A DNA stretch of 64,000 nt from NCBI RefSeq assembly GCF_021028975.2, contig NC_059425.1, positions 19,778,001-19,842,000 of the forward strand, written 5' to 3'. A model generated the notes under the pieces. The model saw only the letters and a program-made list of their open reading frames with translations. It was not told where the DNA came from and did not search any database. Numbering within the stretch: position 1 is the stretch's first letter; the number at the start of each line of letters is the position of its first letter. Positions 300 through 56,262 of this stretch are shown here, piece after piece. This DNA comes from Sphaerodactylus townsendi (lineage: Eukaryota). The position numbers and the translations under genes were made by a program.

Positions 300-1130
300 A
301 GGCGCCCTTGCCTCCCTCCTCCTCCTCGCTCGCTCGCGCTTGGGATCCCCTCGACCCCGCAGCGGTCTCTCACCTGTTGCCGGTCCCCACCTTCCAGAGC
401 GCGCTCTACGACCCGCTTCTGCGTCTCCCGCAGCAGATCCAGCTCCAACAGCCCGGCCAGGCTGGCCTGCAGGCGCTCCCCGATGCGGAGCCGCTCGTTG
501 CCGGACCACAGCGGGGGCGGCACGGCTCGGCGGACCATGACCACGGCGGGGCCCCCGGGCAGAGGGTCCGCGCCCCCCACCGCCCGCCTCTTGGCCAGAG
601 GAGGCTGCATGCGGGGCAGGTGGAGGCGGCGGGCAGAGCTACCGGCAGCGACCCTGGGGGGAGCCAAGGGGGGGGGGGCACCTGGACCGGTTCCGAGCAA
701 TAATCGCGCCCGCCTTGAGCCGGCCCCGGGGAAAAGCTCCGAGCCGCCACTCGGGCGACTTCGCGTCTTGCTGGGCTAAGAAGCAAAGAGCAGCTCAGAC
801 AAAGGGGACGGGTTTGAAAGAGTCACGTGGAGCCAGGTTCGCGCCCCCCCTCCCCAGTTTCCCGTGTTCTGATTGGCTCGAGCTGGATAAAACAAAACAT
901 TCTTAAAGAGCGGAAAAGTTTCCCTGCGGAAAGAGAGACGCCAGATGGCCTCGAGGTGCGGGGGGTCGTTTTCTTTCATCCCCCGTTCTGAACGGGACTT
1001 TACAGAAAAACCCTTAAGGGCGAAAGCAAGGAGTAGAGTTTGCTCCCCGTCGCGGGAGGAAGAGCCAGCCGGGGGTCGTTTGCTGAGGGAACCAGGAGGG
1101 GATGGGTCGGGTTGCCAACGGAGCAGGAGA
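300..1130. promoter_or_regulatory. CpG island / putative bidirectional promoter of the DACT and LC3C-like genes
   Basis: GC- and CpG-rich. E-box GTCACGTG at 822-829; inverted CCAAT (GATTGG) at about 871-876. Genes diverge on either side. Confidence 0.7.
374..610 (-). CDS. DACT4: First coding exon of a Dapper/DACT-family gene, probably DACT4; the gene continues off the left edge
   Basis: MQPPLAKRR...WSGNERLRIGERLQASLAGLLELDLLRETQKRVVERAL resembles the DACT N-terminal leucine-zipper block (DACT1 [29 protein letters not shown]). 79 codons end at a phase-0 donor CAG|GTGAGA at 374/373. Lies in a CpG island. Paralog assignment rests on synteny. Confidence 0.75.
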
Positions 1131-2401
1131 AAAATGCACTGTCCCTTTAAGAGAGGGTTTGCTGCGTGGAAATGGGCAGCTGAAGCTGGTCATGAAGGGG
1201 AGATCAATAATATCACCTGGTGAATCACGACCCTTTCAGCTGTTGTTAAAGGGAAAAGGCTTTTTATTTCTCCAGGCCAGTTGGCAACCCTGCCTTTTCG
1301 ATGGTCTGTGTCTCATTTATACCCGCTTTTCTCCCTAGTGAGGACCCAAGGCAGCTTTTAACCATTCTCCTCTCCATGTTATTCTCACAATAACCCTGTG
1401 AGGTAGGTTAGACAAAGTCAACCAGTGAGTTTTCATGCAGATTCAAACCTGGGATTTCTAGATTCCGGTAGAATATTCTAACCCTTACACCACACTGGCA
1501 CAACTATTAATTGAATACATTTCTGACCCTCCCAGTTCAGAGGTAGTACATGATTGGCCAGAGGAACTCCTTTCAACATAATGTTGCTAGACTTCAGGAG
1601 TATCTATCTGGTGTTCTAACAATCGGTGGGTCGGACACTTCCTTCAGGTACACTGCCTCAGACTATGGAAGCTCCTATGCTTTGTGGTTCAGAAGACAAT
1701 CTCCGTCCCCTGTAGCACCACCTCTTCCTTCTTCATATTAGCATGTATTGAACGCTTTTGATCATCACAAGCGTAATCCTTACAACACCCCAGTACGGTA
1801 GGTCAGCATTAGTACTCCCATATTATAGATGGAGCACCTGCGATTGATAGCCAATAGCTTGTACAGTCACCTAATTAATAAACAGTAGAGACAATTCAAA
1901 CCAGAGAACTTCCCGATTTGCAGATCTGTCTCCTAGTTAGTATACCGAACAGGAACTCAGAGATACACTAGCTCAGGGAGATTCTGTTTATCAAGAAGAT
2001 CAATGGACTTTGAGAGACCTTTCCTCTGTGCGTTTGTCTTCTCTTCCCAGACCATTTAACTCAACACCCATCATTACATATTGTGGCAATGAGTTCCAAC
2101 AGTTCATAGTGCAATGGTGAGGAAAGGCTTCCTTATACCAGGTGCTGATCTAGGGCCAATCAGTTGCATTGCAGACTATAAAAGCAACCTGATGGCCAAC
2201 CCTTCAGGCCCATTCTGCTTCCATCCACCTGAAACACATCTTCAGGGTTTAGATTTTGAAATTGCTGCCTCTCCTGTCCTCACCTGCAAATTTAAGCGGT
2301 AGTAAATTTGTTGGTAAAGGTGAATTTAGGGTTCTTCCTTTTCCTTCCAGCTCTCCCCCCTCCCAAAGGAGGTTTCTTTTGTCTCCCCTTTTCTAAGTAA
2401 G

Positions 2402-5400
2402 ATGGATCCGCTCCCTTCATTCAAACACAGAAAATCCTTTGGTAAGGTGTCCTAGCCAATGTAAATGTTCCTTATTTTGCAGTGTGACTTTTTTCCCCAG
2501 CTGGGAGCGCTCCCTGCTGGTTAGAGAGGTTGCAGTGAACTGTGGGGTGGGGGCTGTGATATATTTTCTGTGGCCTTTTTTGCTGGCTGAGAGAAAACTA
2601 ATTTGAAGGTGGGAGGGTGTTTTCCCTATTGTTGCTGAAGATTTATTTTTTCTGTTCTAGCTGCTAGGAAAAGTGAAGTAGCTTCTATTCGGATCAAGTT
2701 TACCAACAAGCTACCGGTATGTGGGGTTGGGTCTACTCTTATTTGTTGCAATGGGTAATGTCTACTTGGGGGAGGGTGATGAAAATCTGCTCTGTTAAGC
2801 CTGGTGGTAGGAGACTGCTATAAAAGATGATTAAATGGAATTTTTCACTCAAGTTGCATTGGACAGTTCATAGGAGACTGTTCCTAAGGTGCATTGAAAT
2901 CCCTAACCAGTTCACTAATTTTCTGTATTGGTGAATTGTTGTTATTAATACATCTAACTTTCAATGTGGATGAAGCAGTGGATGCTTAAATCCACAGAGT
3001 GGAGCCATGAACAAACAAGTCAGTTTTTCCCCCTAGAACAGTGAAGGCGAACCTTTTTGAGACCGAGTGCCCAAATTACAACCCAAAACCCACTTATTTA
3101 TTGCAAAGTGCCAACACGACAATCTAACCTGAATACTGAGGTTTTAGTTAAGAAAAAACAGTTGGCTCCGAGGTGTGCGTTACTTGGGAGTAAGCTTGGT
3201 GATAGTCGGCTTTGAAGCAACCGTGCAACTCTTCCCACGGGTGAATCACGACCCTAGGAGGGTTTGCTCAAAAGCAAGTCCCATTGCCAGCAACTGAGCT
3301 TACTCCCAGGTAAAGGATCGCACTTTAGTTCTTCGCATGAAAATCAGTGGGGTTTAACAGCACTTAACAGGGTTACCTACACTGCTTCCCCAAAACTAGG
3401 TCTTAGGTTTAATGCTAATAATCGAGGCCAGCCTAGATGTGGGCGGGGGGGCAACTCTGTTTGTGCGTGCCCACAGAGAGGGCTCTGAGTGCCACCTCTG
3501 GCACCCGTGCCATAGGTTCGCCACCACTGCCCTAGAATTACTCTGTACTCTGAAAACCTCAGGAAGGAATGGGCTCACAAAACCCCAATCTTCCAGGTTA
3601 GTCCCTGGGAGGTTAGAAACCCTGCAGACAGCCCAAGTGTCTGTTTGATGCTGCTATCCCTTTTCACTCCCTGGGGTGCCAAAAACAAACTGGGTACTCC
3701 TTGCTGCCACCACTGAGTCTGAAAATATCACCTGCTAAAAAGAGTTGTATGCCTTTCACTCCATATCTGCATTGCCAACTAGAGGCTCTGCCTGGTTGCT
3801 GCACCTGCCAGCTTTGCTCTTACAAGCTTTTGCAACTTTGAAATTTGAAGGGAGTGTGCTCCTGAGACGGCAACTTTACACATTGCGCCCCCCCCCCCCC
3901 CCCCATTACTGCACTTTTCACAGCAAGACCAAATAGGTGAGATGTAGTCCCAGGAATTAGGTTTCGAGCATTCAAAGCATAAGCAAGTTAATAAACAAAT
4001 TCGTGTTGTACACCGCCCAGAGCCCCTAGGGGATGGGGCGGTCTAAAAATCTGAAAAATAAATAAATAAGTAAATAACAGTAATATCTGTGGTTGGTCCA
4101 AGTATTTGGGAGTCAGAAGGAAAGGCAGGCAGAAAATCTACCCTTGTGACTTCATCCTACCTGGGGATTATTTTTTATCTTTTTGCTTCAGGAAGAAGGA
4201 AATGTATTGTAGCAATTATGCTGTTCCCCTCTCTATCCTTTTGGTTGTCATCTTCCAGTAGGGTGTGGGGCGGACACCCATTGTCCTGTTTTTGCCAGAT
4301 CCATTAGCATAACCAAGAGTTGGAGTGCTCTATGCTTCGGGCTGGATGGTTCCTTGCCCCCACCCCAGTGTGGTGTAGTGGTTAAAAATAGGTGGACTCT
4401 AGTCTGGAGAATTGCGTTTGATTCTCCACTCCTCCATATGAGGAGCGGACTCTAATCTAGTGAACCAGGATTGTTTCCTTGCTCCTACAAATGCTGCTGG
4501 CTGAGTGACCTTGGGCTAGTCCCAGTTCTCTCAGAACTCTCTTGGCCACACCTATCTCACAGGGTGTCTGTTGTGAGGAGAGGATGGGAAGAAGTTTTTA
4601 AGCCATTTTGAGATTCCTTACAACTGATAAAAGTCAGGTATAAACCCAAACTCCTTCTCTTCCTTTCTGCTGCATGTGCAATGCAGATGGGTTCCTGAGT
4701 GCACAAAGTGCAGTCACAATGACTGAAATATTGGGATGGATTCTTGGGTAGGGGTCATTTCTCTCCACTCCTTAAGGAAACACACTTCTGTTGACCTTCA
4801 GAGCACAGGGGGTGGCATGCTTTGTATCTTAAGTTTTCCAGATGCTTCCAGGAGACCTTTAATGGAATCTATTCCCTTCAGTCCTCATTTCTGCATTCCT
4901 TTTTGTTCACCATCAAATTGGGATTGATTTGGGATGTTTTATCTGATAAATGAGATATCTGTATGTGTGGATGGGTGCTGTAAAACCCATCCAGAATCTT
5001 GACAGTTGTACCTGGACACTCTGAAACCAATTGTTTGTGCCTGCTGCGGCTTCCTAAAACCCAGTTTTCAGCAACTGGTACAACCACTGGGCCAAGCAAA
5101 TATGGAAAGATACCCTGTTTCCCCTAATATAAGACATCCCCGAAAAATAAGACATAGTAGAGGTTTTGCTGAAATGCGAAATATAAGGCATCCCCCGAAA
5201 GTAAGACATAGCAAAGTTTTTGTTTGGAAGCATGCCCGACGAAAGGAACACAGGAAAAATAAGACATCCCCTGAAAATAAGACATAGCACATCTTTGGGA
5301 GCAAAAATTAATATAAGACACTATCTTATATTCATATTGGGAGGGAGTGGTATTGACTTTACCAACAATTGATCTATGAATCATGGTGGGGGCAAACAGA

Positions 5401-6846
5401 AGACTCTGTCCATTCCCTGTTTGTCTAGAGACAAGTGGTTCCTCCTGCTGGAGCCAAAACATGGAGTGAGCTGGACAGCTGGATTTATCAAACAAACTGA
5501 CTGCCTCCGTGATCCTTCCTACTTTATAGGTGATCCTAGAGCGCTATCCCAAGGAGAAAATATTGCCAGTCTTGAACAAGATCAAATTTCTTGTTCCAGA
5601 AGACTTCACTATGGGCCAGTTTGTTTCTATTATACGGTAAGATTGGTTTATCCATGGCATGAATCCCAGTTGGCAGGAGTGGTGCTTTTAGGTGATCCAA
5701 GTTATCACCAGTCTTATCTACTCACTTAGCTCACCTAAGTACAAGGTAAGCCACAAACTTAAGCCTCTTGTATTGGTGAGAAGTCCTCTTGATTCACTTT
5801 TCAATTGCTGTGGGCTTTGGTGAATCCATGGCAGCTACCTCAAGATCTCTACTTCCTGGTGGCGTACATTATTGTGATTTGAGTCGGACACGGGAAGCTG
5901 GCCCATGCACAAAATACGTCACAGATGACTTATGGCAACTCCACAGGGTTTTCAAGGCAACAGATGTCCAGAAATGGTTTGCCATTGCCCGCCTCTGAGT
6001 TGCAACCTTGATATTCCTTCGTGGTCTCCCATCCAAATATTGACCATGGCCAATCCAGCTTAGCTTTCTAGATCTGATGCGGTTGGGGTAGCCTGAGCTA
6101 TCCAGGTCAGGGCATCTCAGGTCCAACTCAAATCTCTCCTCTGTTCTTCTCCTGTCGGGGTGGTCTTGGCCAAACTCCTCTTTCCCTAAACTGCAGTTTA
6201 TTCATCCTATCAATGAACAAAATGGCAGCCTGCTCGGTGAGATGGTATGAAGCATAACTTATATAGTGCTTATATTTATGTCCATTATCACCAAGTGTTT
6301 CTGCACTTTGCTTTTGGAAGACTGCATTCACTTGAGCATGTTCTTGGTGCTGCTATTTTATCCTGAAGAAATAAGGTGTCCAGATGGCTCCAACAGGTTA
6401 TACAACCAAGGGTTAAGTATCTGGAAGGCTGCAAGTATTTCCACGTGGTATGTAGGGCCTGGTTTAAGCTGCAGATATATTAATGGGATTTAAAAGACTC
6501 TGGTTTGGTGGAGAGGAAGAATCTTGTCATGCGTAGAATGGGGTAAGAGAACTGGTATGATTACAAGCCTTCTTAAAAATACTTTGTTGCCTGCTTTTCT
6601 CACTGAGACCCCAGGAATATTACAGAATAAAAACAACATACTCTCATTGCATAAAACATGATATTTCTTGCTCTTTTCCCCAGAAACAGAATGTCCATCA
6701 GCTCTACCCAAGCCTTCTACTTCCTGGCTGATAATAACCGCAGTATGGTTAACATGTCATCCCCCATGTCTGAAGTGTATTCAACTTACAAAGATGAAGA
6801 TGGCTTCCTGTACATGACCTACGCTTCACAGGAAATGTTTGGCTGA
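2402..6846 (+). CDS. MAP1LC3CL: MAP1LC3C-like ATG8 protein, 4 coding exons, 121 aa
   Basis: Exons 2402-2441, 2661-2716, 5530-5636 and 6684-6846 (40+56+107+163=366 nt), all GT-AG and phase-consistent. Protein MDPLPSFKHRKSFAARKSEVASIRIKFTNKLPVILERYPKEKILPVLNKIKFLVPEDFTMGQFVSIIRNRMSISSTQAFYFLADNNRSMVNMSSPMSEVYSTYKDEDGFLYMTYASQEMFG*, closest in pattern to LC3C. The 56- and 107-nt internal exons are typical of LC3 genes. The symbol is tentative. Confidence 0.92.
3039..3529. mobile_element. Non-autonomous hAT element
   Basis: TIRs CAGTGaaGGCGAACCT / AGGTTCGCCAcCACTG; perfect 8-bp TSD CCCTAGAA; same family as 32905-33385. Confidence 0.85.
4366..4660 (+). mobile_element. Squam3-like (MIR/Ther1-derived) tRNA SINE
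   Basis: tRNA-like head GTGGTGTAGTGGTTAA, CORE-like GTGACCTTGGGCTAGTC, 3' tail TATAAACCCAAACTCCTTCT; many copies in the window. Confidence 0.75.
5111..5332. mobile_element. Tc1/mariner-pogo (Tigger-like) MITE, truncated
   Basis: TA-CCCTGTTTCCCC end and internal AAAATAAGACA repeats; near-identical to 27370-27601. Confidence 0.7.
5905..6115 (-). mobile_element. 5S-Sauria-like SINE
   Basis: Reverse complement has the 5S-like segment AAAGCTAAGCTGG...TTGGATGGGAGACCAC followed by an RTE/Sauria-type GGCAATGGCAAACCA tail. Confidence 0.6.
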
Positions 6847-15520: not shown

Positions 15521-16900
15521 CTACAAGGGATTCTCCACATCCTGTTTGCAACGTTTAGCTGCCAGGTCTGCGTTGTGCGCCTTGCGGATGTGCCGGTAGA
15601 GGTCTCCGGACTGGGTGTAGCTCCGCATGCAATAGCGGCATTCATAGGGGCGCTCCCGGGTGTGGACTGTGGCATGGCGCCGGAGCGTGTAGGAGCACGA
15701 GAAGGTCTTTCCACATGTCTTACAAGTGGGCATGTCCTCTGTGAAGATGCCAAAGTTAGGGTGAACCTCGTAGTCCTGCAGATACATCTGTTCATGCAAT
15801 GATGGAATTGTCATGTTAGAGAAGCTTTGTCCACTGGGCACAGGGATCATGTGATAGGGAACAGGCTCCTGAGTCAGGAAGTTGCCTTCTGAAGATACCT
15901 CCTCCAGCCCACCAGGCTCCGGAAAGCTATCCAAGTGGCGGCTGCAGCCTCCAGCTGACCCTCCTTCCGCACTTTCCAGCCCCATCTCCAGGTTCTGGCC
16001 CTCTAGCTGCTCAGCCGTATCTGGTTCCTCATCAGAGATCACAATGGCTTCCATTTTGACTTTGACGGAGGACCTGTTTGGTTCCTTTTGGCAGAATACA
16101 CGGATGCTGCCTTCCCGCTGTTCCGCATACTTCTCCGGAGCAGTGTCTATACTAGAAGGCCCCTCAGCAATGTTCCCCAGAGGAAAGCAGCTGTGTGAGA
16201 TAGTTTCAGTGGAACTGCTGGGGCTGGAGAGGGAGATGTCAACGATAGCTGGCTGGAGGGGTCTGGTTGGGGGAAGAGCCTGCGGGGAATCGCCTTCCAT
16301 GCCAGGCTGGGTGGTGTCCGCAGCATCCAGCGTGGAGGCCAGCGGTTTCTCAGAACCAGCTTTCTCGACTCCTTTCCATTCCTCTGCATTTTTCTTCTCT
16401 GCTTCACAAGGCTGCAGGGGTGCAGAGGGCAACAGCTGTGCCCTGGGGGCCTGCAGTTGGCACTTAGAAGTGCTGGGTAGAAGTTCTGAACTGGCCGGGG
16501 ACTCTTCTTCCTTTTTGGTGCTGTCTGCTTCAGCCATACCCCGGGCCTGCAGTTTCTTTTTACACACCTTCACAATGTCATTCATGTGCAGGTAACTGGC
16601 AGCAGCGAGAACGTCCTCCACCGGAGTATCGTTGAAGGAGAGACCACCTTGGTACATGAATTCCAGGAGCAGTTCAAACGCTGGGGGGGTGACAATCTCA
16701 TTGTTGATGCACACGAAGTCCCCCTTATCCAGCCCTTCCTTGTAGAACATGTGGAAAAAGGCACTGCACGAGGCCAGCACGGCTCGATGGGCCAGGAACT
16801 GGGTGCTGCCCACCAGCACTGTGCAATCGCAAAGGAAACCCTCGTGTTGCTGATTCCGCAGACTCTGCAACAGGTTCTTGCTGTGGTCGGGGAAATCCAT
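15521..16900 (-). CDS. ZBTB3: Zinc finger and BTB domain-containing protein 3, 459 aa, single coding exon
   Basis: BTB domain [46 protein letters not shown] and two C2H2 fingers ([43 protein letters not shown]) match ZBTB3. Acceptor AG at 16947-16946 lies upstream of the ATG. Confidence 0.95.
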
Positions 16901-23699: not shown

Positions 23700-24060
23700 A
23701 CTGGCATTCTTGCTTGCTTTTTTTGCGACAGCAGCCGCTAGGCGGATGAAGCTTCAAAGCAGCCAGCCCAGCCAATTGCCAGCTGTGGTTTCAAATCCAT
23801 CCAGCAGGTTTGAACTGTTAACGTCTCTGCGTGGTCGGAGCGGAGCTGAAAAGTTTCAGTGGGAGTTCGGATCGGCCCTTTCTGGTGAGGGAGGGAGAGA
23901 GAGAGAGTGCTGCCGGTGGGCATCGCCAGGTGCCTTCCCTCCCACCCTGATGCAATATGAGGAAGAGAGAGCCTGTGAGAGGGAATACTCCTCTGAGAAG
24001 ATCTACCCGCCTGCAGCAAGAGAGAACAGAGGCAGAGGTGAGGACTGGCGGCGGGAAATA
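23700..24060 (+). promoter_or_regulatory. Candidate promoter / non-coding first exon of the PLD gene
   Basis: Local CpG enrichment, CCAAT at about 23772, donor-like CTG|GTGAGG at 23884/23885. The PLD ATG exon starts directly after an acceptor, so an upstream exon is required. Confidence 0.4.
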
Positions 24061-25014
24061 AACCTGCCATGGAGGGGGCATGGGTCAGCGGCACAGGATT
24101 GGCAGGCACAAGGTCCTAGTTTTGGTCTTGGGCAACCATGTAGGCTCCTGCAATGGGAAAACTGAGTAACAGGATCTCAGAGTACTCTTTTTCAAAGCAG
24201 CTTTGGGTTAGAGTAGATTGCTAGGGCTAAATGAAGCACGAGGCCGAGCTGGTGTAAAGCGGAGTTCTATAACAGCTAGACAGCTCCATCTGCAACACTT
24301 ATGAGCACGGATGGGAAAATAATATTACAAATATCCAACGACCATAATTACGATTCGGTGCAAGCGTCAGTCTTTTTTAAGGTGTGTGTATGACCGAGGA
24401 GCTTAATTTCCTGTATTTCTGGTCACTTTTGCATAGGGGAGATGTGAAATCTAAAGGCAGGTGACCAGCTAATTCCCTTTGCCAGCATTTTTTCCGCATT
24501 TGTGGGGCATGGGAAGCAGGAAACTTATCATATCTTGAGCATTTACAGTGTGTTAGACTGGCAACGTATGCCTTAATTCATTTTTGATGAAATTAAAGGT
24601 TTTTTTAATTTGAGGATAAACCACGGCGAAGGGCGAGTAGCTCAGATTTTGTCTTTGATCGCAGTACCTTTGTTCTTATCAGCCAGAACACCCGGAAGGC
24701 GGGAACAGCTTGAATAATTCTGAAGACGTTTGTCCACCTTCCTATTTTATTTTTTTATATATCATCCAAAGTAAGGAGGATAGAGACTTACTGCTTTAAT
24801 CAATGAAAGCTGCAGATTCAAAGAAGGAACCAAGGAAAAATTTGAGTGTGACGGGTTTTCATAGATTCCTGTATTTAGGACCTTAAAAAAAAGAAGAAAA
24901 AAACAGGCCTTTCACCAAACTAATAATATATTAAAGGCCTTAAACCTTGACATTTTAGGAAGCACTGAATCCTGTATTGCACACTTTGGACACATTTGAA
25001 GATTGTTGTTCATG

Positions 25015-25152
25015 GGGTGTTGCAGGCTGTATGGCTGTGTTCCAGTAGCATTTTCTCCTGACGTCAGGAGAAAATGCTACTGGAAAGCGGCCATGCAGCC
25101 CGGAAACCCCACAACACCCCAGTGATTCCGGCCGTGAAAACCTTCGACAATA
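25015..25152. mobile_element. Penelope-derived short palindromic element
   Basis: Hairpin TTCCAGTAGCATTTTCTCCTGAC-GTCAGGAGAAAATGCTACTGGAA with tail GTGATTCCGGCCGTGAAAACCTTCGACAATAC. Relatives at 48688-48870, 49451-49870, 57315-57562 and 62853-63100. Confidence 0.65.
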
Positions 25153-30101: not shown

Positions 30102-30425
30102 AGCCAGTGTAATGTAGTGGTTAAGACCAGGTGCACTCTAATCTGGAGAACTGGGTTTGATTCCCCGCTCTGTCACTTGAACTGTGGAGGCTTATTGGTG
30201 AACCAGATTAGCTTGTGCACATGCCAGGTGGGTGACATGTGCTAGTCACTAACTGGGCTAGTCACAGTTCTTTGGAGCTCTCTCAGCCCCACTGACCTCA
30301 CATGGTGTTTGGTGGGGGTGGGGGAGGGAAAGGAGATTGTAAGCCCCTTTGAATCTCCTTACAGGAGAGAAAGAGCGGGTATAAATCCAAGCTCCTCCTC
30401 CTCTTCTCTTCCTCCTCCTCCTTCT
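30102..30425 (+). mobile_element. Squam3-like SINE
   Basis: Family head, CORE and tail. Confidence 0.7.
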
Positions 30426-30429
30426 TTTA

Positions 30430-31990: not shown

Positions 31991-32037
31991 CTACCACATC
32001 AAGGCCTTCTTTGCCACATTTATATGTGCATTCTCAG

Positions 32038-41000: not shown

Positions 41001-44000
41001 AATGACAGTAGCAAACCAAATAAAATGGCAGATCAATCCAACAGTAGTATAATCAGGATTGCAGCTTTGCAGCTTTGCAGCAGGAGCAGCAGTGGCGTAG
41101 TGGTTAAGAACAGGTGCACTCTAATCTGGAGAACCGGGTTTGATTCCCCGCTCTGCTGCCTGAGCTGTGAAGGCTTATCTGGGGAATTCAGATTAGCCTG
41201 TACACTCCAACACATGCCAGCTGGGTGACCTTGGGCTAGTCACAGTTCTTCGGAGCTCTCTCAGCCCCACCTACCTCACAGGGTGTTTGTTGTGGGGAGA
41301 GAAAGGGAAAGGAGTTTGTAAGCCCATTTGAGTCTCCTACAGGAGAGAAAGGGGGGATATAAACCCAACTCTTCTTCTTCTTTTGTCAGACCAATCCAGA
41401 GGCTTTATAACAGTGGTTCTCAACTTGGGGGTCGGGACCCCTTTTGGGGTCGAACGACCCTTTCACAGGGGTCACCTAAGACTCTCTGCATCAGTGTTCT
41501 CCATCTGTAAAATGGATAAATGTTAGGGTTGGGGGTCACCACAGCATGAGGAACTGTATTAAAGGGTCGCGGCATTAGGAAGGTTGAGAACCACTGTTCT
41601 ATAATGTGGAGCTGGCTTCTGATTTAGCAAGGTGAACATCCTGGAACTAACACTGCCATTTTCTTCCTTTCCCTTCGTTGGCTCCAGCCTCGTATTGGTG
41701 GAGAGCATTCCAGACACATTGGAATACCAACCGGAGGACCCTCGTCATCTGAGCATCTACCAGGCTTGGATGGACCTTCTGGCTGGAGCCAACAGCAGTG
41801 TGGATATTGCCGCTTTCTACTTCACTCTCCGAGACTCCGATATTAAGGTGCAGGATCCCTCTGCTCAGCAGGTCAGTTGCGCTTCTAGGATCCAGCACAG
41901 CAGTAGGGGGAAGAAGCATGAAAGCCACAAACCCTTTGTTGAGGGTGGGGATAGAAGTGCGGCAGAGACGGCCCAACCGATTAGGCAGGGCGGCTGACAG
42001 TGGGACACTAAGGTTGTCAGCTCCAGGTTGATAAATACGTGGAGGTTTTGGGGGTGGAGCCTGAGGAGGGTGAGGTTTAGGGAGGAGAGAGACTTTAGTG
42101 GGGCATTATGCCATAGAGCAGTGGTGGTGAACCTTTGGCACTCCAGATGTTATGGACTATAATTCCCATCAGCCCCTGCCAGCATGGCCAATTGACCATG
42201 CTGGAAGGGGCTGATGGGAATTGTAGTCCATAACATCTGGAGTGCCAAAGGTTCGCCACCACGGCCATAGAGCCTGCCTTCCAAAGCAGCCGTTTTCTAC
42301 ATGTGAACTGATCTCTGGCTCATTCCGCACTTGCAGAATAATGCACTTTCAAACTGCTTTCAGGGCTCTTTGAAGCTGTGCGGAATAGCAAAATCCACTT
42401 GCAAACAGTTGTGAAAATGGTTTGAAAATGCATTATTTTGCGTGTGCGGAAGGGGCCTCTGTCACTTGGAGATCAGATGTAATCCCAGGAGAGCCCCTGA
42501 AACACAACCTGCAGTGCCCCCAGGGTTTTGAAGGACAACAAAATCTGTTTTTCTCAGCTCAAAGGGGAGTCTGCAGAGGGGTGTCTGGGTGGAGGCCTCC
42601 ATTACCATTATAATTACCCCACTTGCTGCCGCCGCCACCTTGGTTCTTTGCCCCTATCTGCAAGCAACTTTAGTGAGAAGGTGGATTATTAAATGAACAG
42701 CCAGGTTCAACCCTCAGCCAAGTTCACATTCCACATTTCTTCCCTGGGCAGTCCAATGCTCACACTACTGTTTAAATTGGCACTGCTAGTCCTGCTGCAC
42801 TGGTACTGGTACTCCTAATAATCCTAGCCCTGTGCCATTATTGCTCACCCTGTCCTTCTGTTCAGTACTCCTAATTCTCCTGCATTGTTCATTCCATGCC
42901 CTAAACTGTAGTACATTTCTACTCAACCCCCTTCTGAGCTCTGTAATCCACCTTGAGTCTCAGTGAAAATGCAGGCTTTCAATAAAACACATGACATTTT
43001 AATGTAAAATAAATACCCCAGCTAAAGACAATTTTACAACCAAGAAAAGATCTTTACCCGGGCCTTGGATAACCAGCCTTTTCCCAGCAATATGGAGCAA
43101 CAGAGGTATTAATCCTGGAGCTACCTTGCAGGGGTGTTGTAAGGAAAGCTGGCAAAGTACAAAATGTGTTCTGTAAATACAAAATATCACTGTACTGTTG
43201 TTCTGCAGGGCAGAGATGTGTTTGACTCACTGCTGGGCCTGCCTTCTCTGGGCGTGAAGCTCAGCATCGCCGTGAATAGCCCTCAGATGTCCAAGGACGA
43301 CACAGAGGAGTTCGCCAACCGAGGTAATGCCAAACGGTGTTCTAATAATGGCAGTCATCTTCTGAGTCTTTCGAGAGCCAATGAGGTGCAGTGTAGTGGT
43401 TTGTGTGTTGGACTACAATGGAAGAAACATGGGTTTGAATCCCAGAGCTCAGCCACAAAGCTTATTGCGTAACTTTGGGCCCGTTGCTCTTTCTTACCCT
43501 GACTTACCTAACAGGATCATTGAGAGAATAAAATAGGGGTGGAGGAGCCTGAACATCTGGGAGGAAAGGTAGGACTTAGTGGTACAAATACAACCGTGGT
43601 GACCTTGATCAAAATTAAAATCGTAGTCAGAAAAACCTAAATAATGAATTTAATGCAAGGAGGTGTTTTCCCAGTTTTAAAGGCACTGCAAGGTAAACTT
43701 TGAAATTGCAACAGGTTTTGTTATTATTTGTAACAAGGGCAGTGAAAGGAACTTATTTAAGAACATAAGATAGAGCCTGCTGGATCAGACCAGAGTCCAT
43801 CTAGTCCAGCACTCTGCTACTTGCAGTGGCCCACCAGGTACCTTTGGGAGTTCACGTGCAGGATGTGAAAGCAATGGCCTTCTGCTGCTGCTGCTCCTGA
43901 GCACCTGGTCTGCTAAGGCATTTGCAATCTCAGATCAAGGAGGATCAAGATTGGTAGCCATAGATCGACTTCTCCTCCATAAATCTGTCCAAGCCCCTTT

Positions 44001-47000
44001 TAACGCTATCCAGGTTAGTGGCCATCACCACCTCCTGTGGCAGCATATTTCAAACAGCATATTCCAATTTCCCCAAAAAAGTTTTGTATATGCTAAAATT
44101 AAGGGGTTTTTTTTGTTTTCTTCATAACTGTGTGGAGTCCTCATTAGTTGTAATCCATTTGTAGTACAGTGCATTACACACAGGTTGTTTTTCTGCCAGC
44201 TAACTTATGTTTTATTGTTGAAGCCCAGAGAAGCATTTGTTACGTTACATTAAATTTGTTATTTAGGTCTTTCTGGAGGCGTGGGTGGTGGGTGGGTGGG
44301 GCCTGGGGATAACTCCTTCTCTGGGCACCCCCCTCCCAGGGGCTTGGTGTCCCTGAGCTATGCCCCCGAGCCCAGGGGGGCACAGCCCCGTGTTCTGCCG
44401 GCTGTCTCCTGCCATTCCCAGGCCCTGGAGATGGCTTGCAGGGAGGTGGCGGGGTGGGGGCTCAGAGGTGTGTGGCCGGGGCACACGCCTTTCATCACGT
44501 GGGGGTGTGTGCTTGGCACCCCCCATGTGACCAAAAGGCATGCGCCCAGGACATGGGTGACCTCATGTCCTTAGGGCGGTATGCCACTGGGTCTTTCTGA
44601 CTACAATTTAATTGCGACAGAGGTCAACACGGTTGTATTTGAATTGTTCCATCCCTGTTGCCATTACTTTATCACCTTAGCCCCGAAGAGGTAGCTGGAG
44701 ATTTTCTGCTATTAAAACTGATATCCAGGTACCAGACATCAGTTAACCTGGAGCGCAGTTAACCAATGGCTGCGTTGGAAGGCAGACTTTATGGCATTAC
44801 ACCCCATTGAAGGTGCTCCCCAAATCCCGCCTTTCCTAGCCTTTGCCCCCCAAATCTCCAGGTATTTTCCAACCCAGAGCTGGCAGCCCTAACTGGAGAG
44901 ATGGAGAGGTCGTCCTCCATGGGGCCATGACTTACTTGATTTTGTTCCAGAATCTAATTATGTGTATCATTGTGAAAAACACAGAGCCTTGTGATTAAGG
45001 TGACCTGGTGAACGAGGGATGAAGAACACGGGGGCACAGATCGTTTGCCAGAGTAAATTGAATGTATTCCCTGCATCCTCCACAGGTGCAGACGTACAAT
45101 ATGTCAACATGAAGAATTTGACCGGGGGGATCGTGCACACCAAGTTCTGGGTAGTAGATCAGAAGCATGTCTACATAGGCAGCGCCAACATGGACTGGCG
45201 CTCACTCACTCAGGTATCTTCTGGGTGTGGGGTGAGTTTGCTCCAGAGAAGCACATTGCCAGAGGAGAGGATGGTTGGAGAGAAAGAGGCCATCTTTGTT
45301 CTTTACGTGACAGGTCAAGGAACTGGGTGCTGTCCTGTACAACTGCAGCTGTCTGGCTCAGGATCTGGGTCGTATCTTTACTATGTACCACATGCTGGGA
45401 GGAGAAGAGGCTTCCATCCCTGCAGCATGGCCAGCCAGCCTTGCGGCAAAGTCCAGCCTAAACAGCCCCTTGAAGCTTCAACTCAACGGCTCCAGTGCCG
45501 AACTCTACATTTCTGTAAGCCTGGCTATTGTTCCGTTCTCTTTGTTCCCTTGAGCATCTGGAAGTTCTGGGATAGGTCAGTTTCCTTGCAAGTAAAAAGC
45601 ATCGGAAACCCTTTTGTACTGTCAGGTTCTGCACTGGTAGACGAGTTGAGCAGGTGGAGGCACAGGCAAAGTCCCAGGCAGGCGGTACTCTTGAAAGTAG
45701 TCAGTAGTGCCCCAAAATCAAGGGGTGTATCTACTAGCCAGCGTGGCATAGTGGTTAAGAGCAGGTGCACTCTAATCTGGAGGAACCGGGTTTGATTCCC
45801 TGCTCTGCCACTTGAGCTGTGGGGGCTTATCTGGGGAACCAGATTAGCTTGTGCACTCAAACACATGCCAGCTGGGTGACCTTGAGCTAGTCACAGTTCT
45901 TCGGAGCTCTCTTAGCCCCATCCACCTCACAAGGTGTTTGTTGGGGGGCAGGGGAGGGAAAGGAGATTGTAAGCCCCTTTGAGCCTCCTTACAGGAGAGA
46001 AAGGGGGGATATAAATCCAGACTCTTCTTCTTCTTCTAAAGTTGGCACCCAGGTCAAGCACTGTGGGCTTTAAACTGTGGGCTCTGCCTCCTAAACTCCA
46101 CCTCCAAAGTCATGTGGACTTCGGAGGCAGAGCCAGCAGTATAAAGCTGGACCCAGCCAGGCTGAGCCTGTAGTTCAAGGCTGGCCTCTGCCTGACCAGG
46201 TGCAGCTTTAAATTGTGAGCTTCAAGGCAGAGCCTGCAATTTAAAGCTAGACTCAGTTGAACCCAGCCTTGAACTCCACTCCTCCCCACCCCAATTCCAC
46301 CTGGAATTCAGGGGCAGGGCATGCAGTTTAAGACAAAGAGCAGTTCAACAGTGTATTGCGGGGGGCAGGGGGTAGTAGCACCAAAAAACCCACAGCCAGA
46401 GGGAGGGGGGGTAGTAGCACCAAAAAACAAACCCCATTTGGTCTCTCTTGGTAGATCATGGGAGGAACCATAGGCCAGTGACAGCGCAGGTGTTTCATGT
46501 GTGTAATCCCTGCTGATATTAGAATATAAGAAGAGCCCTGCTGGATTAGACCTGTGATCCATCTAGTCCAGTACAAGAAAGGGCTGTGGACGGTGGCAGA
46601 GCACTTGCTTGGCATGCAGAAGGACCCAGGTTCAGTTCCCACCATCTCCATTATCAGGTTGGAGGTGACGCAAGAGACTCCTTCCTGAGAGTTGCTACCA
46701 GTCAGAGTAGGCGGACCTTTATGGCCCAGTGGTCAAATTCAGTGCAAGGCACCTCCATCCCATTTGGTTTCACGCAATGGCCAGCAAACAAGGCACAAAG
46801 GCCAAGATCTCCCCCTGATATTGCCCCCTGGCACTGGTATTCAGAGGGCTACTGCCTCAAGGCATGGAGGTTCCCTTTAGTTCTTGTGGTCAGTGGCCAT
46901 TCATGAATTACTTCTCCACAAATCTGTCCAATCCGCCTTTAAATCTAAGTGGCCATCTGTCAGGATGTGTATGCCCCTTCCATAACATGTGGCAGTCAAT

Positions 47001-50000
47001 TCCCCAGTTATCTACTAAGTGAAGAATTTTCTGTTCTGTACTTTCCTTATAGGCTTTCCAGGGGCACCTGGCTGACTGCGTTGTGAAACAGGATATTGGA
47101 CTAGATGGACCATTGGTCCAACCCAGCATGGCTGCTCTTATCATCAATCCCCTGCATTTTCAGAGTATTTAGAGCAGGCCGTGCCAGGAAAAGGCTTCCC
47201 TGTCCCTCAGTTCATGGAGAACCACTGTTAAACTATTCAGGGCACCTCTGACAAGGGGACTGGGACATCTCTCCTTCTCCCAGCCCCCAACACTGTGGTT
47301 TTCTGTTGTTTCTGCAGAGTTCCCCGCCAGCCCTGTGTTCAGAAGGCCGCACCTCCGATCTCATGGCTATTGTGCGCACGATTGAGGATGCCCGGGCTTT
47401 CGTCTACATTGCTGTGATGGACTATGAGCCACAGTGCTCATTCTGCAAACCCAAGAGGTGTGAGCAGGGGGTATGGTAGCTGGGATTGAGGGCTAAAATA
47501 ACTCCTGGACCCTTTTTGCTTCTTCTGTGATGAAGGGAAAGGGCGCTTTCTCCCATGCCAAATAATCTGCTTTCAATGCACTTTGCAGCTGGAGTTTACT
47601 GTGTGAAATGGCACTTTCGCACATGCAGAACAATGCACTTTCAATTCACTTTCGATGCACTTTGCAGCTGGATTTTACTGTGTGAAATCGCAAAATCCAC
47701 TTGCAAACAATTGTGAAAGTGGATTGAAAGTGCAGTATTCTGCGTGTGTGAAAGTGCCCAAAGCTACTTGCAAGCAATTGTTAAAGTGGACTGGAAGTGC
47801 ATTATTCAATATGTGGAAAAGTGTCCAAAGAATGTGGTTTCCACAGTTGTGGATAAGGGAATTGGTGTGGGAGGGCAGATTGGAAGAAACAGCCACAATA
47901 AAGAACATCAGTGAACCACAGTGCTAGGACTAATCTTCAGCTGCTACTCATGCTTTAGTTTGCCACCTAATAAATCAGCAGAGTTGAGTTACAATTGTGT
48001 GAACAGAAAGCCAGATCTAGCAGTAGCGTCATATTTGCAGTCAGTCAGTTTCTGTTTTCAGGCTCAGCAGCTGGGATTGACTCCAGTGCGGTTGTGTGTG
48101 GTTCCCCCCCACAGGTACTGGCCCGTTATCGACGACGCCTTGCGTGCCGCCGCCTGTGACAGAAGAGTAAATGTGCGCCTTCTCATCAGTTGCTGGCCAC
48201 ACTCGCATCGTGACATGTTTGTCTTCCTGGAGTCGCTCATCATCCTCAGCCAGAAGCCACTGAGTTGCCCCATCGAGGTGGTGAGTCCTAGGATCAAAAG
48301 GGGAAAGCTAGGGACCCTTCCCATGGACCCTTTTTCTTGATCCAGATATGTGCAGCTTGACTTTTGGAGGTCTCGGTTTGGAGGTCCTGGTTTGACTGGT
48401 CACCCAGTCAAACCAGGCATGGGAGGGCTGTCTCCATTCACTCGCTTGTCTGCTTCCTCAGCCTTTTATTGCACGCCAAATGCAGTAGACATCGGAAGTT
48501 AAGCAGGATGAATCCTGTCTAGTACTTGGATGGGACCCCCCGCCCCCCCAAGGAATACCAGGCTGCTACGCAGAGGCAGGCAATGGCAAACCACTTATGT
48601 TAGTCTCTTGCCTTGAAAACCCTACAGGGCCACCATAAGTTGGCTGCAACTTGACTGCGCTTTATGCAGACAGATGTGTTAGGTGGAGTGTTGTGGGGTT
48701 CCTGGGCTGTACGGCCGTGTTCCAGTAGCATTTTCTCCTGACGTTTTGCCTGCATCTGTGGCTGGCATCTTCAGAAACGTCAGGAGAAAACGCTACTGGA
48801 ACACGCCCATACAGCCCGGAAAACCCACAACACTCCAGTGATTCCGGCCGTGAAAGCCTTCGACAATACAATGTGTTAGGTGTTGGCGAGCCCCTGCCTC
48901 TCAGCAGGAGCCCCTTTGCATGTTGGATAGAACCACTGCCTCTTACAGACGAATTGTAAGAATTCCTGGGATAATGCCTTGTCTTTGATCACTGTGAAGC
49001 TCTAAATCAGAGGTGGCCAAATTGTGGCCCGTGAGCCATATGTGACTCGCTGGGGAGGCTCAAGATGGTGCAGATCTCCCCCTCTGCGCATCCTTGCCTC
49101 TGGACGCAATGCCACGCTTTGCTATGGGAGCAGGAAGCCTGGAAGGGGCTGTGACAGCCTGACCATGGGAATAGGCAGCAGGAGTGCCCAGGGGCCCCCT
49201 AGCAAACTGTGGCAGCATGGCAAGAGACTAGTACGTGCATAGGGAGACATTCAGGTAGGCTGTGTTTAGCCAATATTCTGAGGCAGGGCAAGGAGAGAAC
49301 GGAGTATGGGCATTAGCTGTGCTCAGCTCTCCTGACTGTCCCACTGCCTCCCAAGCCCACTCAACATTCTCATCTGCCCACAAAAATTGACAGATGAGAA
49401 AGGAAGGTTCTTCTTACTTACTGAAATCCATAATAAATAGAGAAATGCCTTGTTGTTGTGGGTTTTCCAGGCTGTGTGGCCATGGTCTTGTTCCTAACGA
49501 TTTGCCTGCATCTATGGCTGGCATGTTCAGAGGTGTATCACAGAGAGAAGTCTGTTACTGTGTATAACACACTTCGAAAAGCTGTGACTTAGAGCTCTGA
49601 AAAGCTGTGACTAGCCCAAGGTCACCCAGCTGGCGTGTGTGGGAGTGCACAGGCTAATCTGAATTCCCCAGATAAGCCTCCACACCTCAAGCAGCAGAGC
49701 GGGGAATCAAACCCGGTTTCCCCAGATTAGAATGCACCTGCATTCTTCTTAACCACTTCGCCACTGCTGCTCCTGCAGGTTAGGAAGAAGATCTACCAGA
49801 CCACGGCCACACAGCCCGGAAAACCCACAACAACCAGTTGAATCTGGCGTGAAAGCCTTCAACAATACAGAGAAATAGCTTCTTGGCTTGAACGTTTTGT
49901 TTTTATGCTTCATATTTTAAACTGCCTTAGCCCAGTTGTCCATCTTGGCCTAGTACTGTCTCCTCTGACAGGCAGCCATTCTTCCGAGCCTCAGGCAGAG

Positions 50001-51864
50001 AAAGGTCTCTGCCGATACCGTCTACCTGAGATCCTTTAACTGGAAATGGTGGGAATAGAACCTGGGACCTTCCACATGCTGTGAACATTCCATGCCATTG
50101 AGCCTCAGCCCCTCCCCCCCTTGAAAGTGACCCCCCACTAGGCTGTAATGTCTGTTTTCCTTTCAGAATCTTTTTGTTGTTCCTGGAGAGGGAGAACAAC
50201 CTCCGATTCCATACACACACGTCAATCACAACAAGTACATGGTGACTGACCGCCTGGCCTACATTGGTACATACCTCTCTGATTAGGGTTTGCCAGCTCT
50301 GGGCTGGGAATACCTGGAGATTTTGAGGGTGGAGCCTGTGGAGGGTGAGGTTTGGGAAGGGGAGGGACTTCAATGGGGTATAATGGCATAGAGGCTATTT
50401 CCCAAAGGAGCCATTTACTCCAGTTGACCTGATTGCCCTGGGTCAGGAATGATAGCCCCCTGAGTGGAATGACTACTCCTGGGAGAAAACAGAAGTGTTC
50501 TGGGACTGGAATGACAGCCCCTGTGATTGAAATCAGGGTTCTGCCCTGATAATCGCAAGCCTTCGAGTGGAATGAAATACCTTACACCAATTTCAATTGA
50601 AGGAGCCATCATTCCACCCTTGTGTCTGTCATTCCAGGCCCAAAACACTTCTCTTACTCCCAGGGGTTCTCATTCCGCTCTGGGATTTGGCATGTTCTGT
50701 CCATGCTGGTAAAGGTCAAGAAGTCAGGTATCTCTGTCTATACCTTTGATAGCAGAAAGCTGACAGCTGAGAAGGCTTGGTACTACTTGGTGAAGCTTCA
50801 GGTTTTGTACACAAACCAGGGGCCCAGTTATCCTCTCTCGTCCAGGGCCTACAGAAACCTGGAAGAGGCTCTGCAAGGCAACATTACAGAATCCTTCTTG
50901 ACAGATTTATTTTCACAAAAGCCCTTTGAGCTGAGAGACTGGGTAAAACATTTTTAAAACAGTTTCAAAATAGTTCTCTTTTTGCCATCTCACTGCCAAC
51001 TGCTAGTGGTCCGTGTTCGCTGTGGTAGGCTCATTTACTCTTTTGAGTGCCTTTTACAAATAATTTCTTGTTCACAAATATACAGGGGGAGGCAGTGGAA
51101 TTAAGCAGGCCAGCAAGCAGTTATTCGTGCAACATCAACCCAGCCTGTCAGTACCTCCCAATGCCACTTTCTGGATGACTTCCTGTGCTCTTGATCCTAC
51201 AGGAAGCTCTTAATTCTGTGCGGGTTATGTTTGATAGTAAATGAGTAGTAAGCTGCAGTATTGCAGCAAAATCTCTGTTCCTAACCTGAGTTGGATCTCA
51301 ACAGGGGTGGGTATCAGGCAGGCGACTCAAGGCTGACTCCGCCTTCCATCCTTCTGAGGTCGGTAAAACCCGTTTGCCGGAGGTAGTGTAGACAGCTGGA
51401 AAAGGCAGCGGTGAACTACCTATAAATAAAGTTTGCCTACCAGGGGTCTGCAACCTGCAGCTCTCCAGATGTTCATGGTCTACAAATCCCATCGGCCATG
51501 CTGGCAGGGGCTGATGGGAATTGTAGTCCATGAACATCTGGAGAGCTGCAGGTTGCAGACCCTGGGCCCTAGTAAATGTTGCAATGTGACATCACCCCAC
51601 AGGTCAGCGATGAACCAGTGCTTGCCTTTGCCTTTAATGCGTGCATATCTTTTTGACCCTCCAGGTACCTCCAACTGGTCTGAAGATTATTTTACCCAGA
51701 CTGCAGGGGTGGGGTTGATCGTCAACCAGAGCGACCATGACAGTATTACGGCAGGCCAGGAATTCACCCTGCGCCGCCAGCTGGAGCAAGTGTTCCTCCG
51801 GGACTGGGATTCCTCCCACGTTGTGCCACTCGACAGTCATAGAAGTTGCACTAGGAGAAATTAG
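32038..51864 (+). CDS. PLD7: PLD3/PLD4-like type II membrane phospholipase D-family 5' exonuclease, probably PLD7, about 707 aa
   Basis: Confident exons: 39960-40144 (TM: [24 protein letters not shown]), 41688-41871 (LVLVESIP...[12 protein letters not shown]), 43209-43323, 45086-45213 (HTKFWVVD...[10 protein letters not shown]), 45314-45514, 47318-47457 (SSPP), 48115-48280 ([10 protein letters not shown]), 50167-50266 (HNKYMVTD), 51665-51864 ([10 protein letters not shown]). Tentative N-terminal exons: 32038-32241, 34372-34449, 36019-36130, 38441-38751. All are GT-AG and the phases close to 2124 nt. The family call is firm; the paralog name comes from synteny. Confidence 0.88.
32905..33385. 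mobile_element. Non-autonomous hAT element
   Basis: Inverted relative of 3039-3529; TSD GTTTAGAT. Confidence 0.85.
35355..36130 (+). pseudogene. Decayed PLD coding exon split by a hAT-like insertion (35605-35996)
   Basis: One frame runs from the acceptor at 35354/35355 to the donor at 36130/36131 once the insertion and one TSD (GCCTATGA/GCCTCTGA) are removed: 376 nt, phase 0 to 1. In-frame TGA at 35403 and 35556. Confidence 0.6.
36158..36376. mobile_element. Representative of an abundant MITE-like family with (A)GGGTTGCCA termini
   Basis: GTTGCCAGCTCC...TGGCAACCC. Related copies near 19700-19905, 19990-20190, 33890-34125, 36830-37035, 42010-42490, 44690-44890, 50284-50430 and 54473-54990. 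Confidence 0.65.
36551..36825 (-). mobile_element. Squam3-like SINE
   Basis: Reverse-complement family copy. Confidence 0.72.
37668..37835. mobile_element. hAT/Charlie-like MITE (CAGTGGTTCTCAACC family)
   Basis: TIRs present. Copies at 41411-41596, 53846-54031 (TSD GTTTACAG), 57986-58118 and 63499-63610; the last two are cut by an LTR. Confidence 0.8.
41082..41381 (+). mobile_element. Squam3-like SINE
   Basis: Full-length family copy with a (TTC)n tail. Confidence 0.78.
42119..42264. mobile_element. Fully palindromic hAT MITE, about 146 bp
   Basis: Near-perfect hairpin, TSD CCATAGAG. Copy at 54545-54690 (TSD GGCTAGGG); relative at 51441-51564. Confidence 0.85.
42317..42457. mobile_element. 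Harbinger-like MITE
   Basis: GGCTCATTCCGCAC...GTGCGGAAGGGGCC inverted ends; related nested copies at 47540-47826. Confidence 0.6.
43758..44065 (-). mobile_element. CR1 LINE 3' end
   Basis: TAAGAACATAAGA tail and CTGCTGGATCAGACC...CCATCTAGTCCAGC; older related pieces at 46520-47145. Confidence 0.75.
45737..46036 (+). mobile_element. Squam3-like SINE
   Basis: Full-length family copy. Confidence 0.78.
48490..48664 (+). mobile_element. 5S-Sauria-like SINE
   Basis: 5S-like GGAAGTTAAGCAGG...TAGTACTTGGATGGGA followed by the GGCAATGGCAAACCAC tail. Confidence 0.6.
51300..51636 (+). mobile_element. Sauria SINE fragment interrupted by a palindromic MITE
   Basis: GGCTGACTCCGCCTTCCATCCTTCTGAGGTCGGTAAAA core; (GCCTTT)n tail. 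Confidence 0.65.
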
Positions 51865-54358: not shown

Positions 54359-56059
54359 ATGTTTGAATGATGTTGACACGTACGCAGCGCTTTTGTTCTT
54401 TGTGATATACACATGGCATGAATGAATGCCCTCCATCACTCGGCAGATTAAAAAAGGGGCATTTGTGCAATTAGGGTTGCTGACTCTGGGTTGGGAAACT
54501 CCGAGTGATTTGGGGATGGAGCCGGGGGAGGGCAGGGGCTAGGGCCGTGGTGGTGAACCTTTGGCACTCCAGATGTTATGGACTACAATTCCCATCAGCC
54601 CCTGCCATCATGGCCAATTGGCCATGCCAGCAGGGGCTGATGGGAATTGTAGTCCATAACATCTGGAGTGCCAAAGGTTCGCCACCACTGGGCTAGGGCC
54701 TTAACAAGGCATAATGCCATAATGTCCACCCTCCAAAACAGCCATGTTCTTCAGAGGAACTCATCTCTGTCTTTTAGAGACCAGTTACAACTCCAGATGG
54801 GCAGACCCAGTGGTGGGATTCAGCAAGTTCGCACCACTTCGGCAGAACCGGTTGTTAAAATGGTGCTTGTAAACAACCAGTTGTTAAATTATTTGAATCC
54901 TACCACCAGAACTGGTGGTTAAATGATTTGAATCCCACCACTGGGCAGACCCACCCCCCCCCACCCCCCCGGAAAGGTGGCACAACCTTATTTAATTTGG
55001 CTGATTTAGTTTTATTTTAATTGATTTTTTATTTAGTTTGGATGATTTCCTCCCCACCTCCACTGGGATGGGGGGGGGGGATTGAGGTGTCCTATACACT
55101 CCTCCCACTTTGGGGGGGGATGGTTGGGGTGGAAGTATTAAGAGTCTAGAATGTTTTATGGTTTTAGGATTGGTTTTATAGAGGTTACTGTTGTATAGGA
55201 TTTTATTATGCCTTTTATTGTAACCTGTCCTAAGACTGTCATGAAGGGCAGGGAATAAATCTAAAATTATTCTATGTAGTGTTTTAATTGTTTGTAAGCT
55301 GCCCCAAGCCTGGCCAAGGTCAGGGTTGGAGGGTGTATAAATATAATAAATTAAAACACCCTTTGTCTGTTTTCAAGGCCACTTTACCATTTAATTTGTT
55401 TTGCTAGTTAATGCATCTGTACTCCAGCCTTTCTCCCACTGAATACCCAATGCTGCTTACAACATCAATTTTGCCTGAACAACCACCCTGTGAAGTAGAT
55501 CAGTCTGAAAGTGTGTGACTGGCCCAAGGACACCCAGTAAGCTTCCATGGCAGAGTGGGGATCCGAACCTATCATTGTCAGGCCCTCTAACCACTATACC
55601 CACTACCCTTCACGTGCCCCCCCCCCTTCACACTGTTGGAAGGCTGTTCGCTTAGAGCCCTATGCTGTGTTCAGTTTGCAACAGCCCATTCCTCCGCTGA
55701 CTTGAACATCACGAAGGGAGCGATTCGTAAATTTACTAGAAAACCATGATTTGCCCATCCAGAGATTAAATTTTTAAATTAAACTAGAGTTCTCTGGGCA
55801 GGGAACTAAACGCAACAGCAAAAGTGATCAATTCCACCCAGAGACAGGAATCAGAAAATGCTGGATAAACGCTGCTAACTTTTTTTCCAAAGGACCTGAA
55901 AATCACGCCCCCTCCCCCTCTTAAAATCCCACCTCTGCCCAGATGGTTTTTGGATTCGTTGACAATCCTGTAACAGATACCGCTGTGCTTACCATAGTGA
56001 ATATTTATTTCTATAGAGCACTCCCCATTACCTTTTCCCGACCACTACCACACGCTCTC

Positions 56060-56250
56060 TCTAACCATCGACAGCGCGTGCGCATGCAGACAACTGCAAT
56101 TGGTCGGCGCGTGTTTCTTCAAAGAACCGTAGGGTTCTTATGGGCCGCTTAGCAGCCAATCGGTAAGCAGCTGGTATGCAACAGCCTGTCTCTAGTGTCT
56201 GAGCGTTCCTTCCGGTCTAGAAAGAAAAGAGGGGGAAAGAGACGAAGAGG
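56060..56250 (+). promoter_or_regulatory. POLR2G housekeeping-type promoter (copy 1; copy 2 at about 61565-61754)
   Basis: NRF1-like GCGCGTGCGCATGC at 56074-56087, ATTGG/CCAAT pair at about 56099 and 56156, ETS-like CTTCCGG at 56209-56215. Confidence 0.7.
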
Positions 56251-56262
56251 ATGTTTTACCAC
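56251..56262 (+). CDS. POLR2G: RNA polymerase II subunit RPB7, first coding exon (MFYH), copy 1
   Basis: ATGTTTTACCAC|GTGAGT gives MFYH plus a consensus donor. RPB7 begins MFYHISLEHE, and POLR2G neighbours ZBTB3 in human. Confidence 0.75.

Follow-up and report, generated by a model that had tools for sequence, protein, structure and literature searches.

The Dact4 locus of the gecko Sphaerodactylus townsendi and its PLD7-type member of the PLD3/PLD4 family

PLD3 and PLD4 degrade nucleic acids in the lysosome, limiting TLR9 and TLR7 activation. PLD5 and MAP1LC3C are neighbours on 1q43 in the human genome. Here we describe a window of 64,000 nucleotides from the gecko Sphaerodactylus townsendi in which a further gene of the phospholipase D (PLD) family, denoted PLD7 in the following, is found among four other genes. 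Their order is DACT4 (−), an ATG8 gene of LC3C type (+), ZBTB3 (−), PLD7 (+), and POLR2G (+). "Window" denotes the whole stretch analyzed; it contains no N, and its positions equal the positions on record CM037614.2 (GCA_021028975.2, 196.6 Mb) minus 19,778,000.

For the most part, this linkage is known. Schubert et al. (2014, BMC Evol Biol 14:157; PMC4236578) derived four Dact loci from the two whole-genome duplications (2R), which form a paralogon on chromosomes 14, 6, 19, and 11; in trees, genes at the Dact1 and Dact3 loci pair with each other, as do those at the Dact2 and Dact4 loci. Dact4 was reported from reptiles, coelacanth, and ray-finned fish. It is linked to Ttc9 and in most cases to Map1lc3c, which in sarcopterygians is adjoined by Zbtb3 and Polr2g. 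Mammals and frogs retain the locus without the Dact gene, in human on chromosome 11 (PMC4236578). The DACT4-LC3C-ZBTB3-POLR2G linkage is thus not new, the block mainly confirms a paralogon already published, and "pld7" exists as a gene symbol in fish. The PLD gene is unmentioned in the text and supplements of Schubert et al., where the synteny figures are images. Within the literature searched, the symbol pld7 occurred in gene lists only, and we found no paper treating it as a vertebrate paralogue. What the locus adds is a probable fourth member of PLD3/4 type with intact catalytic motifs, occurring from sharks to marsupials.

PLD7 in the PLD3/PLD4/PLD5 family

A search with one PLD exon against 1.84 billion representatives had long proteins as its best matches. 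The word search with the closest full-length match retrieved the window's own product, teleost proteins named pld7, and marsupial proteins named "PLD3-like". Orthologues from geckos, other squamates, tuatara, turtles, alligator, caecilians, salamanders, lungfish, and coelacanth were found along with them, as were further ones from sharks, rays, bichir, sturgeon, and gar. Clade representatives were named by cluster look-up, two human PLD4 records in the cluster listing being left unused, and a careful maximum likelihood (ML) tree was built from 45 sequences and 483 columns. The gecko entry is database record P0272.

The window gene is placed with the fish proteins named pld7, separately from this gecko's own PLD3. 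The pld7 clade has a support of 100/100, with members from sharks, ray-finned fish, coelacanth, lungfish, amphibians, reptiles, and marsupials. The PLD3 clade, including PLD3 of this gecko (P0174), is supported by 99/95 and the PLD4 clade by 100/100; both are sister groups (92/84), and the vertebrate sequences are separated from those of snail, coral, and springtail (100/98). This gecko's canonical PLD3 is encoded on a different chromosome (158.9-Mb record). The distinct PLD paralogue proposed in the initial annotation is thus recovered: the gene does not fall inside PLD3, and the genome holds a PLD3 copy elsewhere.

NCBI names of the type "PLD3-like", together with the identity of 50-54% to PLD3 (46% to PLD4), might suggest a recent, lineage-specific copy of PLD3. 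This reading is refuted by the tree, as the fully supported clade reaches from sharks to marsupials and does not contain PLD3 from the same species; we assign it practically no probability.

Judged by this phylogeny, PLD7 is probably a fourth gnathostome gene in the PLD3/PLD4/PLD5 family, and its origin as the fourth 2R copy appears well supported. The PLD7 and PLD3 clades each contain cartilaginous and bony vertebrates, with the invertebrates as a single outgroup; PLD4 was sampled in mammals only, with hagfish as sister. The placement of pld7 outside the PLD3-PLD4 pair is in agreement with the published pairing of chromosomes 14 and 19 (Dact1/3) versus chromosome 11 (Dact4). The view of the whole block as a fourth 2R copy, put forward at the outset, is supported for PLD by the ML tree and had been published before for DACT4.

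The NCBI product P0272 (525 aa) starts at 38593 and maps to the window exons at 94-100%. Upstream of it, the exons beginning at 23957, 32032, 34336, and 38438 correspond, with 58-68% identity, to the extended N-terminus of the orthologue from Paroedura (P0121). In a three-frame reading of exon 4, the assembly shifts frame twice between 38491 and 38572. Positions 38481-38571 comprise 91 letters in the assembly versus 68 in DNA contigs of the read runs X1, X2, and X6, one of which carries another organism code; the 68-letter form brings 38438-38480 and 38572-38751 into one frame. The frame breaks are thus probably an assembly fault, an internal stop still being possible, and the full protein probably has about 690 aa. 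An interspersed repeat occurs in three copies with similar open frames of about 110-175 aa (Table 1), two of them in PLD7 introns.

Pfam reports PLDc (5e-11) and PLDc_3 (8.6e-8) in PLD7, and the window exons match PDB structures of PLD3 and PLD4. Both HxKxxxxD...G(S/T)xN (HKD) motifs are intact in P0272 and likewise in 11 of 11 further members of the pld7 clade checked, marsupials included. Upstream of the catalytic domain, pld7-clade members possess a hydrophobic segment followed by GW(F/Y)xW. PLD7 would accordingly have type II membrane topology: its N-terminal tail would face the cytosol, a single transmembrane segment would follow, and the luminal domain would carry both HKD motifs. Given this membrane layout and the two motifs, it most likely acts, as PLD3 and PLD4 do, as a 5'-3' exonuclease of endolysosomes.

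In the predicted cytosolic tail, a motif W(E/Q)VV(K/R)D is present in squamates, tuatara, and alligator (window 38462-38476; residues 129-133 of P0121), and one caecilian has a looser form, W-R-M-L. The motif was not found in PLD7 of turtles, salamanders, fish, and marsupials. Its W-x-V-V core resembles an LC3-interaction motif, and its conservation in sauropsids would fit a route of sorting or ATG8 binding. We regard it as rather unlikely, yet worth stating, that PLD7 actively degrades nucleic acids as a fourth endolysosomal exonuclease and that its long cytosolic tail provides such a route, which PLD3 and PLD4 lack. If this were true, lineages that lost PLD7 (placentals, monotremes, frogs, and birds) would really differ from marsupials, which retain it, in nucleic-acid clearance before TLR7/9 sensing. 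For comparative work on innate immunity, PLD7 offers a concrete target at low cost, for example as zebrafish pld7 or in opossum cells.

Several points weigh against the picture of PLD7 as an active fourth 2R paralogue within a duplicated block. The tree covers PLD3, PLD4, and pld7 without PLD5, which leaves the four-clade 2R picture incomplete; PLD5 was absent from the matches of all searches. Tree building was confined to the PLD family. The only PLD3/4-type proteins of cyclostomes recovered, P0167 and P0397 of hagfish, group with PLD4 (96/91) on a branch of 1.17, a length that makes this placement unsure. The human map positions of PLD3, PLD4, PLD5, ZBTB18, ZBTB42, and MAP1LC3C enter as background information. 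Enzyme activity and localization are extrapolated from about 50% identity to PLD3. Finally, contigs of the four read runs examined continue across introns, so that these runs behave as DNA; no RNA run was among the listed reads.

Gene losses at the locus across vertebrates

Gene models and annotation confirm all five genes in the order and orientations first noted. The gecko locus, which possesses both PLD7 and ATG8, was compared with its counterparts in Tasmanian devil, platypus, Xenopus, kiwi, and filefish. In the Tasmanian devil (Sarcophilus), the order is TTC9C (+), ZBTB3 (−), a PLD gene of 514 aa (+), and POLR2G (+); PLD7 is present in the same orientation relative to ZBTB3 and POLR2G as in the gecko, and ATG8 is absent. 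The platypus locus comprises POLR2G, ZBTB3, and a TTC9C-like gene, with neither PLD7 nor ATG8. In Xenopus laevis, POLR2G and ZBTB3 are accompanied by an ATG8 gene of 152 aa and PLD7 is absent. Both genes are missing in kiwi, where a rearrangement has placed ZBTB3 between GANAB-type and RCE1-type genes. The filefish Nelusetta ayraudi carries pld7 elsewhere, in the row syvn1, gpr137, pld7, a UPF0697 gene, and fam199x, and ATG8 was not seen there. Several genes of this neighbourhood also appear in a hypoxia gene list of pompano (PMC12903247). At the thresholds used, no PLD relics were detected in the loci of platypus, kiwi, and Xenopus, and no LC3 or DACT relics in that of the Tasmanian devil.

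Linkage of ZBTB3 and PLD7 is suggested for further species: in 9 squamates, one caecilian, 2 salamanders, and 4 marsupials, the scaffolds carrying the two genes have the same length. In Crotalus adamanteus, a protein of 835 aa named "phospholipase D3-like" (P0316) also contains the domains SHS2_Rpb7-N and S1. This gene model reads through from PLD7 into POLR2G, which indicates that the two genes are adjacent on one strand in this snake as well.

According to the initial annotation, PLD was one of three genes missing from this locus in mammals. This does not hold, since the Tasmanian devil keeps PLD7 between ZBTB3 and POLR2G; "lost in mammals" is valid for PLD7 in platypus and placentals only. 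With the devil PLD as query, high scores were obtained only for Sarcophilus, Sminthopsis, Dromiciops, and Monodelphis. The last marsupial-type match scored 766 bits and the next, PLD7 of a turtle, 564 bits, with no placental, monotreme, or diprotodont protein in between. That eutherian proteins do not score close to the clade hints, indirectly, at a distinction between PLD7 and PLD5. No PLD7 protein of koala, wombat, possum, or kangaroo was among the search matches, and a loss in Diprotodontia is therefore possible. The marsupial proteins (P0348, P0131, P0426, and P0341) form a long branch (0.81) among the amniote sequences of the pld7 clade; HKD motifs are intact in all four, and the N-terminal tails are short, about 30-100 aa. 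Losses thus differ by lineage: the gecko locus keeps DACT4, the LC3C-type ATG8, and PLD7, each of which would have been dropped singly by various tetrapod lineages.

The three genes had also been proposed to form an autophagy-lysosome module, selected to remain adjacent because its members work or are regulated together. All three are indeed adjacent in the gecko, the neighbourhood of PLD5 and MAP1LC3C in human makes a proximity of PLD and LC3C genes old, and the LC3-interaction-like motif described above is present in the tail of lepidosaur and alligator PLD7, the looser form occurring in the caecilian. This tail motif, however, was not found in turtles, salamanders, and fish. Marsupials keep PLD7 without ATG8 and DACT4, teleost pld7, located between gpr137 and fam199x, is separated from zbtb3 and polr2g, and Xenopus keeps ATG8 without PLD7 and, according to Schubert et al., without dact4 (PMC4236578). 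Moreover, Dact4 has neither the leucine zipper nor the PDZ-binding motif needed for Dvl interaction; because of the missing PDZ-binding motif, its authors suggest that it may not bind Dvl (PMC4236578). Taken together, losses lineage by lineage, the relocation in teleosts, and the missing Dvl-binding parts of Dact4 argue against a selected module, which we consider improbable.

Retained ancestral linkage is the simpler reading. We think it probable that the gecko locus is the vertebrate Dact4 locus, orthologous to human 11q12.3 around TTC9C-ZBTB3-POLR2G, with its linkage retained from before 2R and its genes not forming a functional unit. The adjacency would then reflect the kept pre-2R arrangement. 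DACT4 and the LC3C-like gene lie head to head with 1.8 kb between them, and a shared promoter region may help to keep this pair together.

DACT4, LC3C-type ATG8, ZBTB3, and POLR2G

Coordinates of all features are compiled in Table 1. The block had initially been delimited to 374-56262. Its start is confirmed as the donor of DACT exon 1; its end corresponds to the upstream copy of the first POLR2G exon, whereas NCBI starts the gene at the downstream copy.

Table 1. Features identified in the window (window positions).
Feature	Position	Strand	Remarks
DACT4 exon 1	374..610	−	ATG at 610 (alternative 538), GTGAG donor after 374; remaining gene left of the window
LC3C-type ATG8	2402..6846	+	exons 2402-2441, 2661-2716, 5530-5636, 6684-6846
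Interspersed repeat	11694-12035, 21337-21783, 29033-29563		three copies
ZBTB3	15521..16900	−	single coding exon, 459 aa; BTB and C2H2 zinc fingers; identical to database protein P0001
PLD7-type gene of the PLD3/4 family	23957..51864	+	tblastn with P0121 and P0272, annotation, Pfam
PLD7 exons 1-4	near 23957-24040, 32032-32241, 34336-34449, 38438-38751	+	
PLD7 exons, middle part	39960-40142, 41686-41871, 43206-43325, about 45080-45213, 45311-45520	+	39960-40142 transmembrane segment; about 45080-45213 HKD1
PLD7 exons, 3' part	47306-47458, 48107-48280, 50167-50271, 51664-51864	+	50167-50271 HKD2
Tandem duplication	54650..63994	+	period about 5.5 kb; 54650-58538 versus 60149-63994, 93% identity including gaps
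POLR2G first coding exon, upstream copy	56251..56262	+	MFYH, 12 nt
POLR2G first coding exon, downstream copy	61755..61766	+	MFYH; annotated gene start, gene passes the window end

The DACT exon matches the Pfam family Dapper with 27.3 bits (cutoff 27). Its sequence LWSGNERLRIGERLQASLAGLLELDLL fits the Dact4-specific motif 1 (Schubert et al., supplement 9), given as SLWSG..RVRIGERL.A.LAG.LELEL; the window exon reads PLWSGNERLRIGERLQASLAGLLELDLL and thus shows the form of motif 1 found in Dact4 only, not that of Dact1, Dact2, or Dact3. Together with the linkage to Map1lc3c, Zbtb3, and Polr2g, which agrees with the published locus, this bears out the earlier naming of the gene as DACT4.

The four ATG8 exons add up to 366 nt, i.e., 121 aa and a stop codon, which equals the length of the ATG8 product annotated there; the latter carries PF02991. 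In an exon-wise PDB search, exon 3 scored 40 bits against LC3C and 31 against LC3A/B, and exon 4 scored 63 bits against LC3C and 57 against LC3B; matches of exon 4 in the ESM Atlas were generic ATG8 clusters only. The C-terminus reads ...EMFG followed by the stop codon, with the conjugation glycine in terminal position and no propeptide. By its ATG8 domain, its nearest relative LC3C, and the C-terminal glycine, the predicted protein is a member of the LC3C subfamily of ATG8.

Less clear is its relation to human MAP1LC3C, the best match of both large exons. The human gene adjoins PLD5 on 1q43, in a paralogous region, and zebrafish carries two gene symbols, map1lc3c and map1lc3cl. The Xenopus ATG8 gene at the same locus shows only 69% identity to the gecko gene in exon 3 and 43% in exon 4; the gene thus evolves fast, and similarity by itself is not decisive. 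The gecko gene may be orthologous to human MAP1LC3C instead of forming a separate "LC3C-like" ohnologue, though we lean against this. The best match of the two exons speaks for orthology, as does the name Map1lc3c given to the gene at this locus by Schubert et al. (PMC4236578), and no second LC3C-type gene of this gecko turned up, though the presence of one was not tested for. A second LC3C-type gene goes unmentioned in a 2026 survey of ATG duplications.

All named matches among the best 120 of the ZBTB3 protein are ZBTB3, in support of its orthology. No paper naming ZBTB3, ZBTB18, and ZBTB42 together was found. The annotated POLR2G product has 172 aa with the domains SHS2_Rpb7-N and S1, and four of its codons are inside the window. 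The POLR2G start exon, along with the region upstream of it, is contained in each copy of the 5.5-kb duplication, and ungapped segments are 97-100% identical; the repeat may be either a true duplication or an assembly fault.

Comparison with known systems

The closest described locus is the Dact4 locus of reptiles and coelacanth (PMC4236578), with which the window shares the linkage of Dact4, Map1lc3c, Zbtb3, and Polr2g and the same conclusion of 2R paralogy. Schubert et al. treat the ATG8 gene as Map1lc3c and raise no question of paralogy. Human MAP1LC3C (PDB 2NCN and 3VVW) shares the ATG8 fold family with the gecko protein and is the top match for both of its large exons. The gecko protein differs in its length of 121 aa, in ending at the glycine without a propeptide, and in one extra residue (FLADNN versus LLV-NN in human).

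Fish pld7, "phospholipase D family, member 7", belongs to the same clade as the window gene; in Nelusetta it is placed between gpr137 and fam199x, whereas gecko PLD7 is placed between ZBTB3 and POLR2G. With the endolysosomal 5'-3' exonucleases PLD3 and PLD4 (PDB 8V05, 8Q1K, 8V08, and 9VBJ), PLD7 has in common the two HKD motifs, PLDc_3, and a transmembrane segment that precedes the catalytic domain. In contrast to both, the region preceding the luminal domain, i.e., tail and transmembrane segment, is much longer in non-mammalian PLD7, roughly 150-490 aa among the sequences checked, and PLD7 forms a separate gnathostome clade.

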